Shown piece after piece: positions 2,557 to 58,597 of a DNA stretch of 64,000 nt. The DNA lies in sequence record MW460245.1; one strand, written 5' to 3'. Every line of letters starts with the position of its first letter. Positions within the stretch are counted from its first letter, which is position 1. Both the position numbers and the translations under genes were made by a program. The notes under the pieces are model-generated. The model had not been told where the DNA came from. It saw only the letters and a program-made list of their open reading frames with translations, and did no database searches.

Positions 2557-2565
2557 CGAATTTGA
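2557..2565 (+). promoter_or_regulatory. CGAATTTGA motif (putative phage promoter)
   Basis: Exact copies at 2557, 12113, 33937 (+) and 58589-58597 (-), all intergenic and upstream of a start. Confidence 0.6.
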
Positions 2566-2600
2566 CAGCACTAGCAGTAACCATTCCTATTGGAGAAAAC

Positions 2601-51781: not shown

Positions 51782-52960
51782 TTAGAAGAAACTGCCGATG
51801 CCTTTGACGAGGTCAAGACCTTTGTCGATAGCAGCCGAACCAAGCTTGTTGATCGCGGCCTGGGCAAAGCTAGGGAAGTCATGCGGGTTATTCACCACAC
51901 CTTGAACCATCGCACCATCAACAGGGAGGATGTTCATGAAGACATCGCCTACACTAAAGTTCACCTGATACGTGAGGCGATCTGACGCGCCGCTATTGAG
52001 ACTCAGGGCATCGATGTTCACCGGCCAGCATTCCGTGTACTGGATGATTGCCAGCTCTTGCCGGATGACTGACAGCAGGTATATGTTGATGCTCTTCTTG
52101 TAGTCGATCGGTCGACCGAAGCCACCACCCATCGTTGCTGCGCTGGAGGCACTGAAAGGCTTCAGCACTTGGTTATGCCACGCCTGAAGATATGACAGCG
52201 CAACGTTATTGCAGTCAGCATAGATACCAAGACGCAGGTTATCAACGCTGTACTTGTCGGCGTAGTGGCGGTCACGACCTTCACGGAAGATCGAACGCGT
52301 ACCGAACTGTCGGAAAGGCATGTTAGCCTCCTCGACGTAGTACCAAGGTAGTTCGACCGCACCTTGCACTGCTGCTACTGAACCACCAAATACAGAACCA
52401 CCAATGGTCGATACGATCTGACCGGGAATGCCAGGGAGACCCGCTGTCAGGGAACCAACTGCGGCATTACCGAGGCCAGCCAAAAGCCCACTAGATGCAT
52501 TTGAGATCGGCGAGGACGAACCGATGACAGGCAGCTGGGCATACCAGCAATAGCTCATCATAGGGTCAGCACGAGCTTGAGCACCTAGGAGAGCGTGACC
52601 AAGCGGTACACCACCGCTACCTGAAGCAGGGCTATCAACACCAATGATCTGGCCTGGGTTGAAGATGGAGTTGCCACCAAGCCCCTGAATAGCAGCGCCG
52701 AAGATGTCTTGAGGTGCGCTAGTTACCTTACCAAGTGCGCCCTGCCAGTCGCCGTTGAGGGCGTCCATGGCTGCGCCAACTGCACTATTGATGCCTTGGT
52801 TAAGGACGTTCGAGACCGTTCCACTAACGCGGTTGTTGATCTCGTTCTTGGCGTTTTGAATCACGCCGTTGACCGCACTCTGAACACCGCGAACCTGGCC
52901 ATCGACCTGACTCTTAACCTGCTGTTTTGCGTTACCGATTATGTCGTTGAGGAAACTCAT
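51782..52960 (-). CDS. Tail tube/initiator (gp19/gp54-fold) protein with Gly-rich N-terminus
   Basis: YVEEANMPF, L.L.IY.D.......YLQAW, Y...WPVNI..L.L......V.F: gp19 fold pattern. Confidence 0.7.
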   Translation of the reverse strand: MSFLNDIIGNAKQQVKSQVDGQVRGVQSAVNGVIQNAKNEINNRVSGTVSNVLNQGINSAVGAAMDALNGDWQGALGKVTSAPQDIFGAAIQGLGGNSIFNPGQIIGVDSPASGSGGVPLGHALLGAQARADPMMSYCWYAQLPVIGSSSPISNASSGLLAGLGNAAVGSLTAGLPGIPGQIVSTIGGSVFGGSVAAVQGAVELPWYYVEEANMPFRQFGTRSIFREGRDRHYADKYSVDNLRLGIYADCNNVALSYLQAWHNQVLKPFSASSAATMGGGFGRPIDYKKSINIYLLSVIRQELAIIQYTECWPVNIDALSLNSGASDRLTYQVNFSVGDVFMNILPVDGAMVQGVVNNPHDFPSFAQAAINKLGSAAIDKGLDLVKGIGSFF

Positions 52961-52976
52961 GACCACCCCTAAGGGC

Positions 52977-53163
52977 GGGAGATACGGCTGAAAGGCGAAC
53001 CTCGGGAATCAGCCATACTCCCGGGTTTATGGAAAGTTACTTAGCCACTTAGTGGTCTAAAAAGCGGCAGGGCTCGGCGATCGGTCACCGTAGTACAACC
53101 CTGCCAATCTATCTGGTGTAGGAGCAACCCTTTCCTATTCGGAGCTACAGACCTCCAACACCA
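52977..53163 (-). ncRNA. Highly structured intergenic RNA candidate (includes a probable terminator at 53060-53105)
   Basis: Three predicted domains: a TGGTG/CACCA-closed multiloop; a GGCAGGG/CCCTGCC stem followed by GCTTTTT; a 14-bp stem capped by AGG-TTCG-CCT. Confidence 0.5.
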
Positions 53164-53179
53164 CACGCCGATTGGGTCC

Positions 53180-53575
53180 TTACTTAACCTGCTTGCTGGT
53201 CAAAGGTGCCGTGATACGATAGTCACCTACAGCCGGCGGGTTGTCCAAGTCCGAATACAACGATTCGTCTCTCGGTTGAATCGGTTGGATAGCAAACCGC
53301 ATGCCTTCCGGATCACGTTGAAAGCATTTCGATCCTGCAGGAAGATGCCAGTTAGCAGGCGGTGCAATTTCCTTCCAGCCTGCACCTTCCAGTTTCCCTA
53401 CAGTTTTCGTCAGTGATGCTTTCGGGATGTGAATGAAGTCTTCGTAAAGGCCGCCACCACCTGTAACGATAGGGCTTTTCAGTAGGGTAGAGATGCCCTT
53501 GAAATACTTTCGATTCACCGGAGCAGCTTCCAGGAGGTTGCTTGCTTTAAGGCGGGCTGCTGCTTGGATTTTCAT
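53180..53575 (-). CDS. Hypothetical protein with MKIQAAARL N-terminus
   Basis: ORF with AAAGG RBS; motif shared with 33011. Confidence 0.7.
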   Translation of the reverse strand: MKIQAAARLKASNLLEAAPVNRKYFKGISTLLKSPIVTGGGGLYEDFIHIPKASLTKTVGKLEGAGWKEIAPPANWHLPAGSKCFQRDPEGMRFAIQPIQPRDESLYSDLDNPPAVGDYRITAPLTSKQVK

Positions 53576-53591: not shown

Positions 53592-54044
53592 TTAGCCCCA
53601 CATCATCGTCAGCATGGGATCGCCATAGTTGAAACCATTCGGCGCCGGACGCAAGAGACTAATGACATCGGGGTTGATCCGCCCCTGCGGTGGGAGGTAA
53701 TAGGCACCCTGTTCAGCAGTGTCCAGATGACCTTCCTTCACGCGCTGGTAAAGATCACGTTGTACCACGGTACAGACCTCGAGAGGAGCCTCAGCCGGAA
53801 TCTGAGGCTGGAGCTCATCAGTCTTGTACTGAAACCACACCTTCGGCAAAGCAGGCAGGTAGGCGCGCCGGGCATTCAACGCGCTCAGCAGACGGTCCAT
53901 GCGAGGATCTTCCGAGACGATAACGATATCCCGGTCACGCATTGCGACCATACCGGATACCATAATCAAGTCTCGGGTCAGCTGGTTCTCTACCTGCGGT
54001 GTGTAGTCATTGTAGACCACACCAATGTAGACCGGCTTTTTCAT
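53592..54044 (-). CDS. Hypothetical protein
   Basis: GAGGTG RBS; packed operon. Confidence 0.7.
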   Translation of the reverse strand: MKKPVYIGVVYNDYTPQVENQLTRDLIMVSGMVAMRDRDIVIVSEDPRMDRLLSALNARRAYLPALPKVWFQYKTDELQPQIPAEAPLEVCTVVQRDLYQRVKEGHLDTAEQGAYYLPPQGRINPDVISLLRPAPNGFNYGDPMLTMMWG

Positions 54045-54056
54045 AGGCTCACCTCG

Positions 54057-54341
54057 TTAGGCTTTCAGGCCTTTGGCAAGTTGTTTCGCCTGGTCAAGGG
54101 TAATTGTGTACACCTTGTTGGGTTCCCGATTCAGGATCAGCCGAATCTTCTTCCCATCCGCCGACTTACGCACACCGAACTCTGTACCCTTGGATACCGT
54201 TACCGGCGTACCTCGGTATGAGAGCTCTACAAGGGCCCGCCCTTTGTAGGTGTAGAAGTCATAGTGCTCAACTGCCTTTGGTGCAGCGAAGACCTTCGAC
54301 TGCGTAAGGCGCGCTGCGGCGTCTGTACAAAACGAATACAT
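54057..54341 (-). CDS. Hypothetical protein (DAAARL motif)
   Basis: Packed behind the probable portal. Confidence 0.7.
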   Translation of the reverse strand: MYSFCTDAAARLTQSKVFAAPKAVEHYDFYTYKGRALVELSYRGTPVTVSKGTEFGVRKSADGKKIRLILNREPNKVYTITLDQAKQLAKGLKA

Positions 54342-54344
54342 TGA

Positions 54345-56342
54345 TTACCCTTTCATGATACCACCAGCCAGCGTGGTAGTGGCACGACCAGTTCGTTCGA
54401 TGTTGCGCTTCTTGAGCTCCATGCGATAGTGAGGATCCTTCTCCGCATCGGCAGCAATCTTCGCAAGCTTGGCATTAAAATCACGTTCCTTAACGCGCGA
54501 ATTCAGCACGTGATGACGACCAGAACCAGACTTATTGGGTCGGCTCATTTCCTGACCGCTGAACGAGCGCGCACCGATACCAACCCGCGTACGGTTGTTC
54601 GCCAGAGAAAGGCTCGTCAGCTCTGCACCGAGCTCTGCACGAACCGAGGCGAAAGCACGGCGAGCACGAGTGCTATCACCACCATTGTTCCGCAAGGCGC
54701 GCAGGTCACGATCAGACAACGAGCTCAGGATACGGTTGAATGCCTTACGCGATGCGTAGACGTCACCACCTTCCTCGTCGTATTCCTCTTCGCCTTCGTG
54801 CGTCGTGTCCTTACCTGTGTACTTCTCCAGCTGCTTACGCAACGGTGCATCGTCCTTCAGGTCTTTCAGCAGAGCATCCGAATCGATACCAGCTGCCGCC
54901 ATCCACATCTTGAGCGGAATCGGAACACCCTTATCGCTGGCTTTTTCCAGCATGTCGAACAGGTTGTCCTCACCCTTTGCCTCAAGACTCTTCGTCCAGT
55001 GCAGCGTCGGCATGCGCAGCATCGCGCGGTTCGAGGCATTGAACAGGAGTTGCTTCGGCGTCAGGCGACCCTTAGCCTTCAGGCGGTCATCCATCAGGCC
55101 ATTCACGACTGCGATCAGCGGGAACAGCTTGCGGTTGAACACTTGATCCGTAAGGTGATTACGGTAGGCGTTCTGGGACTCCAAGAACGTCGAGTACGAT
55201 TGCTCGGCCGACGCATATGACTGCTCGGAGGACAGGAACGATTCCGAGATACCCAAAGCACGCAGCTTGTACGGGCTCAGGACGTCCATCATATCCGTCC
55301 ACTTCAGGAAGTCACCTGCAGGACGAACGTCGACGGTCTGCACTGCGTTACGCGAAGCAACCCAACCACCCAACGGATCAAACTCAGCTGCCTGGAACAT
55401 GCCGACCAGTGCGTTCAGTTCCTCACCCGACGGCGTCCACGTATCGTCACCTGCAGTCAGGTGAGTGATGGCGCGTTGACGGCGTGCCACTTCAACCAGC
55501 GTACCACGGAACAGAGTCTTCTCGATCAAATACATCGGCAGGATGCGATGCAGGTACGACACATAAGCGCGGTCGCTCAGCGTCTTACGACCAACGAACA
55601 GAGTCGTGACGGGGTCCAGCGTGAATGCGCCACTGCGCAGCATGTCCGTGAACTGGTGCGGCATCTGAGCCAGATACTGCTTGGCATATGCCGACGTGTC
55701 GTTGACAAACTGCTGTACCGCCTGCGAAACACGAACGTTGATCGTCGGATCGATGTTGTGGAACGGCGACGGCAGCACGGTACAGGCGAGTGCATCGTGC
55801 TTCAGCGTGTCCAGGAACTGCTTGCTGATAGGATCGAAGACGAGGGAGCCACAGAAGAAACCGTCCGTCAGGTACGCGACAGAGATTTCGCTCATCATCG
55901 TTTCTATGTTCAGCTGGGCGAGAGCGTCATCGAAGTATTGAAGCTCGTGCTCCGGAAGGCCACGAAGGTCCCAATCCGAGAACGTGAAGGTCGACTGGAT
56001 GTCGATTGCCGAGCCTGCCGTGTTATCGAACAGATAGATGTCGCGGAAGAACAGCGCCAAGGACGAGGTGTCGATCAGCGACGGATCAGCCGGCAGAATA
56101 CCAGTCATCATGTACTGATATTGGCTATTCCAGAAGCTATTCACGCTCGTCGAAGCCCCACCTGCGAAGCCTGCAGGTCCGCTAAGGTTGGCCAGCACCT
56201 GCGTGGCCTGATCCATCCCAGCAATACCGCTTAGGATGTTGTTGCTTCGTGCTGCGGACGCGGCGATTCGGTTACCAGCAGAATGATGCGCGATGCGCAC
56301 CTCACCATTGGAAACCCCGGTCACTCGATTTACAGGGAACAT
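54345..56342 (-). CDS. Probable portal protein
   Basis: 665 aa in the packaging cluster; portal-like layout (YL.DGFF.G.L.F; ALGISESFLS...YASA); charged C-terminus. No motif is decisive. Confidence 0.55.
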   Translation of the reverse strand: MFPVNRVTGVSNGEVRIAHHSAGNRIAASAARSNNILSGIAGMDQATQVLANLSGPAGFAGGASTSVNSFWNSQYQYMMTGILPADPSLIDTSSLALFFRDIYLFDNTAGSAIDIQSTFTFSDWDLRGLPEHELQYFDDALAQLNIETMMSEISVAYLTDGFFCGSLVFDPISKQFLDTLKHDALACTVLPSPFHNIDPTINVRVSQAVQQFVNDTSAYAKQYLAQMPHQFTDMLRSGAFTLDPVTTLFVGRKTLSDRAYVSYLHRILPMYLIEKTLFRGTLVEVARRQRAITHLTAGDDTWTPSGEELNALVGMFQAAEFDPLGGWVASRNAVQTVDVRPAGDFLKWTDMMDVLSPYKLRALGISESFLSSEQSYASAEQSYSTFLESQNAYRNHLTDQVFNRKLFPLIAVVNGLMDDRLKAKGRLTPKQLLFNASNRAMLRMPTLHWTKSLEAKGEDNLFDMLEKASDKGVPIPLKMWMAAAGIDSDALLKDLKDDAPLRKQLEKYTGKDTTHEGEEEYDEEGGDVYASRKAFNRILSSLSDRDLRALRNNGGDSTRARRAFASVRAELGAELTSLSLANNRTRVGIGARSFSGQEMSRPNKSGSGRHHVLNSRVKERDFNAKLAKIAADAEKDPHYRMELKKRNIERTGRATTTLAGGIMKG

Positions 56343-58566: not shown

Positions 58567-58588
58567 TTCAAGTCCTAAACTGTTTCCG

Positions 58589-58597
58589 TCAAATTCG
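58589..58597 (-). promoter_or_regulatory. CGAATTTGA motif upstream of ruvC
   Basis: Exact reverse-complement copy in the 32-nt terL-ruvC gap. Confidence 0.55.

Follow-up and report, generated by a model that had tools for sequence, protein, structure and literature searches.

The intergenic gap upstream of the baseplate genes

The DNA analysed here, referred to as the window, is 64,000 nucleotides (nt) long and corresponds exactly to the final 64 kb of Burkholderia phage BCSR5 (MW460245.1), a jumbo myovirus of 227 kb; record positions are obtained by adding 163351 to window positions. The subject of the analysis is a non-coding gap of 219 nt between minus-strand genes (52961-53179), which is best explained as a composite control region. 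Upstream of it the minus strand encodes, in this order, a UvsX-like recombinase, the large terminase, a Holliday-junction resolvase, the portal (54345-56342) and three small open reading frames (ORFs). Downstream, a block of baseplate and tail-fibre genes opens with a tail-tube-initiator-like protein of 392 amino acids (aa) (51782-52960, minus strand; phrog_45 'tail tube', 5e-18), followed by baseplate hub, baseplate wedge and tail proteins. Homologues of the 392-aa protein are annotated as 'tail tube initiator' in BcepSauron and as 'baseplate protein' in Motura, and PDB sequence searches with the two proteins flanking the gap gave no match. An earlier note on this DNA had called the gap the largest in the structural block, and this it is: all other gaps in the minus-strand structural block from 34 to 64 kb are of 42 nt or less, and no other sizeable non-coding stretch interrupts these roughly 30 kb of structural genes. 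The note had also placed it between head and tail operons. It does lie directly before the baseplate and tail genes, but the block upstream consists of recombination, terminase and portal genes, of which the capsid is not part. Since the tail sheath is encoded elsewhere in the BCSR5 genome, a position between the packaging/portal block and the baseplate block is the more exact description.

A search at the DNA level returned BCSR5 itself as the sole match. Homologues of the 392-aa downstream protein, at 35-50% identity, were found in BcepSauron, BcepSaruman, phiRSL1 and Motura, and further homologue loci in metagenomes (23) and in IMG/VR (35). The comparison set consisted of 29 distinct upstream regions from RSL1, Saruman, Motura, IMG/VR and metagenome contigs, and a comparable gap preceded the orthologous gene in all relatives compared. 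Placed side by side, the relatives showed an ordered series of modules, A1 (a box), A2 (a hairpin), A3 (a terminator), B (a pseudoknot) and C (a hairpin at the ribosome-binding site, RBS), a layout that has been maintained even though neighbouring proteins of these phages are no more than 35-50% identical. The region of module B starts with ACCC and contains GAGGTT in the relatives. The modules also occur independently of each other. Loci L054 and L063 have the terminator and module B and are without A1 and A2, L009 has A2 and A3 and is without B, and L040 has a GIY-YIG gene placed between A3 and B. The gap is a chain of separable modules, most likely a composite cis-acting control region and not a single RNA gene, and the single multi-domain RNA of about 190 nt proposed in the earlier note was not borne out.

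Folding energies were compared with those of dinucleotide shuffles. The whole gap folds at -90.3 kcal/mol (z = -2.98) on the gene strand and at -76.5 kcal/mol (z = -1.89) on the opposite strand. All stems quoted in the note were present on the minus strand where it had put them, and its impression of a region structured far beyond a plain terminator was upheld, as the gap holds a conserved RNA-level element on the gene strand, with conservation extending well past the terminator stem. No known family accounted for this element. Searches of the window against Rfam 15 at the gathering threshold gave no match, a permissive search (E up to 10) gave only chance matches in the gap (E = 2.3 and 7.6), and six relatives gave no Rfam match either. 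ARAGORN found no transfer RNA (tRNA) or transfer-messenger RNA in the region. A mimic of the tRNA T-arm, considered on account of the GGTTC in the linker of module B, was rejected, having neither a closing stem nor an ARAGORN match. A conserved small ORF was likewise rejected; BCSR5 has a GTG-initiated ORF of 41 aa at 53041-53166, and in the family no frame runs uninterrupted through the conserved anchors in more than 11 of 25 and 12 of 23 sequences. The region was undescribed in the literature searched.

Several relatives carry additional genes or sequence replacements at this place. The gene in L040 (L040:1687-2394) is of the GIY-YIG (LEM-3-like) homing-endonuclease type and stands between terminator and pseudoknot, and BcepSauron gene 254 (L002:2267-3004), of the GIY-YIG/NUMOD3 kind, separates the leader from the tail gene and sits at the latter's start codon. 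Saruman is without a GIY-YIG insert. The intergenic region appears to be an insertion hot spot for homing-endonuclease-type genes. In the Motura-like phages (L004/L056 and L019), A1, A2 and A3 are kept and a purine motif in A2 is duplicated (GGGAAGGGAAGGGT); about 100 nt before the tail gene, a divergent sequence that was undetected by the model of module B replaces its canonical form.

The pseudoknot leader and the ribosome-binding site

Module B (52975-53028, minus strand) is predicted to be an H-type pseudoknot leader of 54 nt, matched by the covariance model with 45.9 bits (E = 7e-14). Its first helix, S1, pairs CCC GGGAG (53025-53018) with TTCCC G-A-GG (53008-53000), with A53002 bulged. 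The second helix, P2, pairs the S1 loop TATGGCTGA (53017-53009) with TCAGCCGTA (52991-52983). The linker in BCSR5 reads TTCGCCTT, and across the family the S1 loop is complementary to the segment that follows a linker of 9-11 nt. From an unguided MAFFT alignment of 23 sequences, RNAalifold predicted S1 with seven of nine pairs compensatory, CCC and the next 5-6 nt being paired with nucleotides before and within G-A-GG and the A bulged. A covariance model built with S1 only was then used to align 28 sequences. S1 was paired in 97% of cases, with changes on both sides in six of eight pairs, and P2, which was outside the model, in 84%, with changes on both sides in five of seven. The two helices, which cross, thereby show both-side changes in 11 of 15 pairs. 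For the structure as a whole, 91% of cells were paired, compared with 29-47% when the 3' partners were slid by 1-3 columns; the covariation score was 0.563, at most 0.133 for the slid versions, and none of 500 shuffles scored as high. An earlier count of covariation, based on MAFFT only, agrees with the count based on the model. The covariation is carried by at least 15 different S1 sequences across the family, and the invariant positions include the two C-G pairs beside the bulge (28/28 each), the bulged A and a U in the linker.

Folded as a nested hairpin, module B reaches -27.2 kcal/mol (z = -5.63). Frequent G-U pairs, which would be C-A mismatches on the other strand, identify it as an RNA of the gene strand; together with the strand asymmetry of folding, they place the structure in the gene-strand transcript. 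Module B is accordingly, as far as covariation can tell, an undescribed and well-covarying H-type pseudoknot in an mRNA leader. The earlier note had drawn this part as a plain hairpin, in which GGGAG met a distal CTCCC, TATGGCTGA met TCAGCCGTA, and an AGG/CCT stem formed the cap. The inner pairing is real and covaries. GGGAG, however, prefers the proximal TTCCC, which makes the fold a pseudoknot and leaves the distal CTCCC as a weaker alternative; the cap is not conserved, and the drawing as a plain hairpin misses the pseudoknot that the covariation supports.

The module occurs once in the window, where the next match has 12.2 bits, and nothing above 13.2 bits was found in the remaining 163 kb of BCSR5. 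There was one copy in the 100 kb of RSL1 that were examined, and each relative locus had a single copy, always upstream of the tail gene and on the gene strand. Conservation extends to at least 25 lineages. Pattern scans of IMG/VR with the module B signature, a search that was not exhaustive, gave among the matches listed only two contigs that scored with the model, both already known members of the family, and no instance in another genomic context; two weak matches in IMG/VR (L195 and L233) had no tail-gene homologue downstream.

Immediately ahead of the tail gene lies module C, an RBS hairpin CCGCCC-TTAG-GGGTGG (52963-52978, minus strand; -11.3 kcal/mol, z = -2.40). A sequence resembling the Shine-Dalgarno (SD) element, GGGGTGG (52969-52963), lies in its 3' strand, 2 nt before the ATG at 52960, and at least two-thirds of the SD are paired by this hairpin in 21 of 25 relatives. 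The suggestion in the note that CCC-TTA-GGG might occlude the RBS was right in substance, the hairpin being longer than it was written there (CCGCCC/GGGTGG, 52978-52963). The alternative partner of the S1 5' strand CGGGAG is the distal strand CTCCCG (52976-52981, minus strand), and this nested pairing is called P1. Family-wide, the P1 duplex has -9.35 kcal/mol with its own partner and -6.71 kcal/mol across sequences, with none of 5000 permutations as low; it is weaker than S1, for which the corresponding values are -10.77 and -5.14 kcal/mol. The distal segment of P1 overlaps the 5' strand of hairpin C, that is, the anti-SD strand, in 19 of 22 lineages; of the 16 lineages with stable distal pairing, 15 show the overlap. 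In BCSR5 the two share 3 nt. Judged from sequence, S1, P1 and hairpin C would together have the topology of a translational switch, for which two states and a possible selector are proposed below.

Terminator, purine-motif hairpin and promoter-like box

Module A3 (53059-53105, minus strand) is an intrinsic terminator by its sequence features, as the earlier note had recognised. It consists of GGCAGGG...CCCTGCC with an inner CGGTGA/TCGCCG hairpin, followed by GC and TTTTT; the stem occupies 53105-53066 and the T-run 53063-53059, and the element folds at -23.7 kcal/mol (z = -3.75). A GC-rich hairpin with a T-run was found at this position in all relatives. In BCSR5, the T-run and module B are separated by a spacer of 33 nt (53026-53058, minus strand) holding a small hairpin CCAC-TAA-GTGG (53045-53055, minus strand; z = -1.96). 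This spacer is confined to BCSR5, the relatives having 0-7 nt except for L010 with 18.

Module A2 (53114-53163, minus strand) appears in minimum-free-energy folds as a long hairpin, TGGTGT.GGAG / CTCC.ACACCA, with the purine motif GGAAAGGGT (53135-53127, minus strand), unique in the window, in its loop. The outer stem is conserved with differing sequences: the duplex with the own partner has -14.1 kcal/mol and the cross-sequence duplex -8.75 kcal/mol, none of 5000 permutations was as low, and the own strand was the best partner in 10 of 19. The motif itself is near-invariant among 21 lineages, with the following counts in its eight columns: G 19, G 16, A 15, A 21, G 16, G 19, G 21, T 13. The note had read this part as TGGTG/CACCA closing two hairpins. 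The TGGTG/CACCA stem and the pairing of TGGAG stood up, but the conserved fold is one long stem and the inner TAGGA/TCCTA hairpin is not conserved. Three kinds of pairing in cis were examined and rejected. An RNA antiterminator was not supported, the 5' strand of the terminator pairing with its own A2 region at -8.9 kcal/mol and with those of others at -9.2 kcal/mol (not significant); in the positive control, the 3' strand against its own 5' strand, none of 5000 permutations was as low. Alternative pairing of the 3' strand within module A gave no conserved helix, and pairing of the purine motif with the downstream leader showed no enriched complementarity (mean z = +0.29). Because no conserved helix competes with the terminator and the purine motif is not complementary to the leader, module A is not an attenuator of the riboswitch type. 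If termination is regulated, a trans-acting factor would probably be responsible.

In the relatives, module A1 is an AT-rich box of 10-12 nt directly after the upstream stop codon of an ORF209-like gene (CCAATTTTACAG in RSL1), and exactly one box occurs per 6-kb locus, always at the same position and on the same strand. BCSR5 has kept only the first six letters of it, in the remnant CCCAATCGGCG (53166-53176, minus strand). The loss is explained by the insertion of a 131-aa ORF (53180-53575, minus strand), specific to BCSR5, which is located between the ORF209-like gene and the conserved non-coding region and occupies exactly the position of the box in the relatives, with CCAA at both junctions (53588-53585 and 53175-53172). 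This ORF had no tblastn match outside BCSR5 and no PHROG, Pfam or PDB match, and it is without similarity to RSL1 ORF209. The orthologue of RSL1 ORF209 is a gene of 150 aa (53592-54044, minus strand; BLASTP 40% identity, E = 1e-34), and in the relatives a gene of this type directly precedes the non-coding region.

Elsewhere in BCSR5 the box is intact. Two perfect copies, GAATTTGACAG (2558-2568, plus strand) and GAATTTGACGG (58586-58596, minus strand), lie 30-40 nt upstream of start codons, one of them before the resolvase gene, and a third, intergenic copy has one mismatch. RSL1 has a related box at the orthologous resolvase position, and its near-matches to A1 stand after terminators, 20-45 nt upstream of ORF188, ORF215 (resolvase) and ORF221. 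As a pattern, GAATTTGAC(A/G)G, the box is rare; besides the two perfect window sites it was recorded at 144850 (plus strand) of MW460245.1. A role as general late promoter was rejected, as there are about three intergenic sites in the 227-kb genome and no overall over-representation. A1-type boxes may be rare, specialised promoters or operators for a few operon starts.

Other observations concern the surroundings. A non-coding stretch of 410 nt (33916-34325), where the plus-strand gene block switches to the minus-strand block, contains a terminator-like hairpin GGCCCAAGT...ACTTGGGCC (about 34290-34260, minus strand) and a copy of the A1-type box with one mismatch (34069-34080, minus strand). 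The protein of 94 aa just after the portal (54057-54341, minus strand) has a KMPT-N domain (PF20294, E = 4.5e-15), a domain usually found at the N-terminus of KTSC/metallopeptidase fusions. BCSR5 also encodes a GTP cyclohydrolase I and a 7-carboxy-7-deazaguanine synthase (MW460245.1 7783-8454 and 10018-10881), which suggests a 7-deazaguanine DNA modification pathway.

Proposed terminator read-through, competing explanations and known systems

Measured from where the T-run ends, the CCC of module B lies at a median distance of 3 nt and the start codon at a median of 80 nt; in L009 the start codon is 23 nt from the T-run. Promoters downstream of the T-run were searched for with the family box and a sigma-70 scan. 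No promoter-like box was present between T-run and start codon in any of 23 sequences, and the sigma-70 scan of this interval in BCSR5 gave nothing. With no promoter-like box and almost no space after the T-run, the baseplate genes would be transcribed only by read-through of A3, and the terminator would therefore act as an attenuator or insulator on the baseplate genes relative to the packaging genes. We infer that the baseplate operon depends on transcription through the terminator, barring a promoter type concealed in A2/A3. The earlier note had offered an attenuator coordinating tail with head synthesis as one possibility. The order of box, hairpin and terminator, the short distance from T-run to pseudoknot and the lack of a box downstream all agree with this idea.

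The sequence of events suggested by these elements would begin with transcripts from the upstream resolvase-portal genes, which would pass the A2 hairpin and meet the strong intrinsic terminator A3. In the relatives, transcripts from the promoter-like box after the upstream stop codon would take the same route, and in BCSR5 only upstream read-through would feed the system, because the inserted ORF destroyed the local box. By its topology, A3 would lower or time baseplate transcription relative to the packaging genes. Since no alternative RNA antiterminator is conserved, read-through would be either a constitutive leak or dependent on a trans-acting factor, for which A2 with its invariant purine loop is a candidate recognition site. 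The read-through RNA leader would begin with the pseudoknot, whose structure follows from covariation and whose function is proposed here. With the pseudoknot formed, the anti-SD strand would be free to sequester the SD of the first tail gene and translation would be low; with the alternative pairing P1 formed, the SD would be freed. A bound factor (a protein or a small ligand) or the kinetics of folding could choose between the two states, and the invariant unpaired nucleotides of module B are the reason to think of such a selector. The pseudoknotted leader probably meters the amount of baseplate protein made, and module B may also protect the 5' end of the operon mRNA.

Taken as a whole, terminator read-through combined with pseudoknot-linked translational control of the first baseplate gene is the reading we hold with moderate confidence. 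Several points weigh against it. Termination, read-through, transcript ends and translation states are all deduced from the nucleotide sequence. The A2 hairpin folds in BCSR5 alone at -18.7 kcal/mol with z = -1.64, which is not significant. P1 is absent or weak in about a quarter of the lineages (L006, L008, L010, L020 and L028), and part of its signal could come from SD/anti-SD-like composition. Hairpins at the RBS are common in phage mRNAs, and the z-scores here are modest (mean -1.25). A promoter of another type could be embedded in A2/A3, and the rarity of the A1 box, with 3 intergenic sites in 227 kb, would also allow an operator in place of a promoter. No trans-acting factor was identified, and no candidate antitermination protein was searched for.

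Two other explanations concern single modules. Module A (A1, A2 and A3) could be an independent small RNA (sRNA) gene of about 100-130 nt with B as an unrelated neighbouring leader, the exposed purine motif acting in trans on phage or host mRNA or titrating an RNA-binding protein. An sRNA gene would be laid out in just this way, with a promoter-like box ahead of a structured body, an invariant single-stranded motif in that body and a U-run after the terminator hairpin; modules A and B also occur separately in the loci named above. Module A nevertheless always adjoins the tail gene though the upstream gene differs, the unenriched complementarity between motif and adjacent leader speaks against this account, and the downstream operon has no other visible promoter, so that read-through of A3 would be needed anyway. 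In BCSR5, moreover, the box has been broken by the inserted ORF and no dedicated promoter is left. We therefore consider an independent sRNA, which the earlier note had also proposed, unlikely in BCSR5 and possible in the relatives that keep the box; as an explanation of the region it is improbable. Somewhat less doubtful, yet still rather unlikely, is that module B is a passive 5' stabiliser or processing barrier that neither switches nor communicates with the RBS, shielding the baseplate mRNA, once read-through or U-run cleavage has produced it, against 5'-end-dependent decay. The pseudoknot begins just where a processed 5' end would be, the covariation of S1 and P2 is far stronger than that of P1, and in L006, where P1 is missing, a spacer of 124 nt separates B from the start codon. 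On the other hand, a stabiliser would need fewer invariant unpaired nucleotides than are present (the bulged A, and a U and a C in the linker), and the overlap of the distal complement with the anti-SD strand in 19 of 22 lineages also speaks against this account.

Module B might also represent a new class of small self-cleaving ribozyme or metabolite riboswitch. Its compactness, its H-type fold and some ten invariant positions, unpaired ones included, would suit such a class, as would conservation in so many lineages with no Rfam match; we consider it very improbable, since metabolite sensing has no obvious rationale at a structural gene and none of the ribozyme and riboswitch models showed a likeness at E up to 10. 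Least probable of all, and hardly credible to us, is that the conservation reflects DNA-level signals (a promoter or operator, a packaging or recombination site) or a small protein-coding gene, and not RNA structure. The A1 box is probably a DNA signal, the region attracts homing-endonuclease-type genes, and the 41-aa ORF exists in BCSR5. Compensatory changes with many G-U pairs, the crossing topology and the strand asymmetry are, however, signatures of RNA, and no frame stays open across the anchors beyond the counts given above. For modules A2, B and C this explanation is largely refuted.

A bolder version of the favoured reading, of terminator read-through with translational control, would make module B and the SD hairpin a new class of translational switch that senses an effector and couples synthesis of the first baseplate/tube-initiator protein to the state of assembly or infection. 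In that version, module A would be the RNA element that a processive antitermination system recognises in order to open the baseplate operon of RSL1-like jumbo phages. As a joint proposal this is speculative and unlikely to hold in full. A possible effector would be unassembled baseplate protein acting on its own leader, and should there be an effector at all, an RNA switch controlling a gene for virion assembly would be a rarity. To our knowledge, essentially nothing is known about late-gene regulation in RSL1-like jumbo phages. The region offers a concrete point at which baseplate transcription (by the terminator) and translation (by the pseudoknot and the SD hairpin) would be set relative to the packaging genes, and it contributes a pseudoknot motif, undescribed and well-covarying, to the known phage cis-regulatory RNAs.

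Late-operon control in lambda rests on the promoter pR', the 6S leader RNA, the terminator tR' and antitermination by Q, and HK022 uses put RNA. The arrangement here is similar in having a promoter-like box and a strong intrinsic terminator within 100-150 nt, ahead of a long late structural operon without other promoter, and in having, as put does, a conserved stem-loop between promoter and terminator. It differs in that no counterpart of Q, N or put was identified, candidate proteins not having been searched for, that there is no sequence or Rfam similarity, and that the box is not sigma-70-like and is lost in BCSR5; antitermination is here putative. Compared with ordinary intrinsic (Rho-independent) terminators at operon boundaries, A3 has all their sequence features, but it is embedded between two conserved structured modules and the operon downstream has no promoter of its own.

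Module B resembles the SAM-II and preQ1-II riboswitches, being an H-type pseudoknot of roughly 50 nt that belongs to a 5' leader, has an A-rich third loop and keeps certain unpaired nucleotides conserved; a putative alternative pairing would, as in those riboswitches, control access to the SD. Unlike in those, the SD lies in a separate downstream hairpin outside the pseudoknot, the regulated gene is structural, and no Rfam model matches module B at E up to 10. The leader pseudoknot of T4 gene 32 is an autogenous translational operator, and the likeness lies in a phage leader that opens, some 45-60 nt ahead of the start codon, with an H-type pseudoknot, which in BCSR5 would likewise control translation. 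In T4 the pseudoknot is followed by an unstructured A/U-rich tract and the element is bound by a single-stranded-DNA-binding protein, whereas in BCSR5 it is followed by a hairpin and the product is a baseplate/tube-initiator protein without known RNA binding. Late genes of T4 such as soc, e and I-TevI have hairpins that sequester the RBS, and module C shares with them an SD of a late or structural gene that would be buried in transcripts from upstream, limiting translation. In T4, a late promoter located within the hairpin provides the relief. No promoter box was seen inside module C, and the candidate for relief is instead the anti-anti-SD strand within the pseudoknot.

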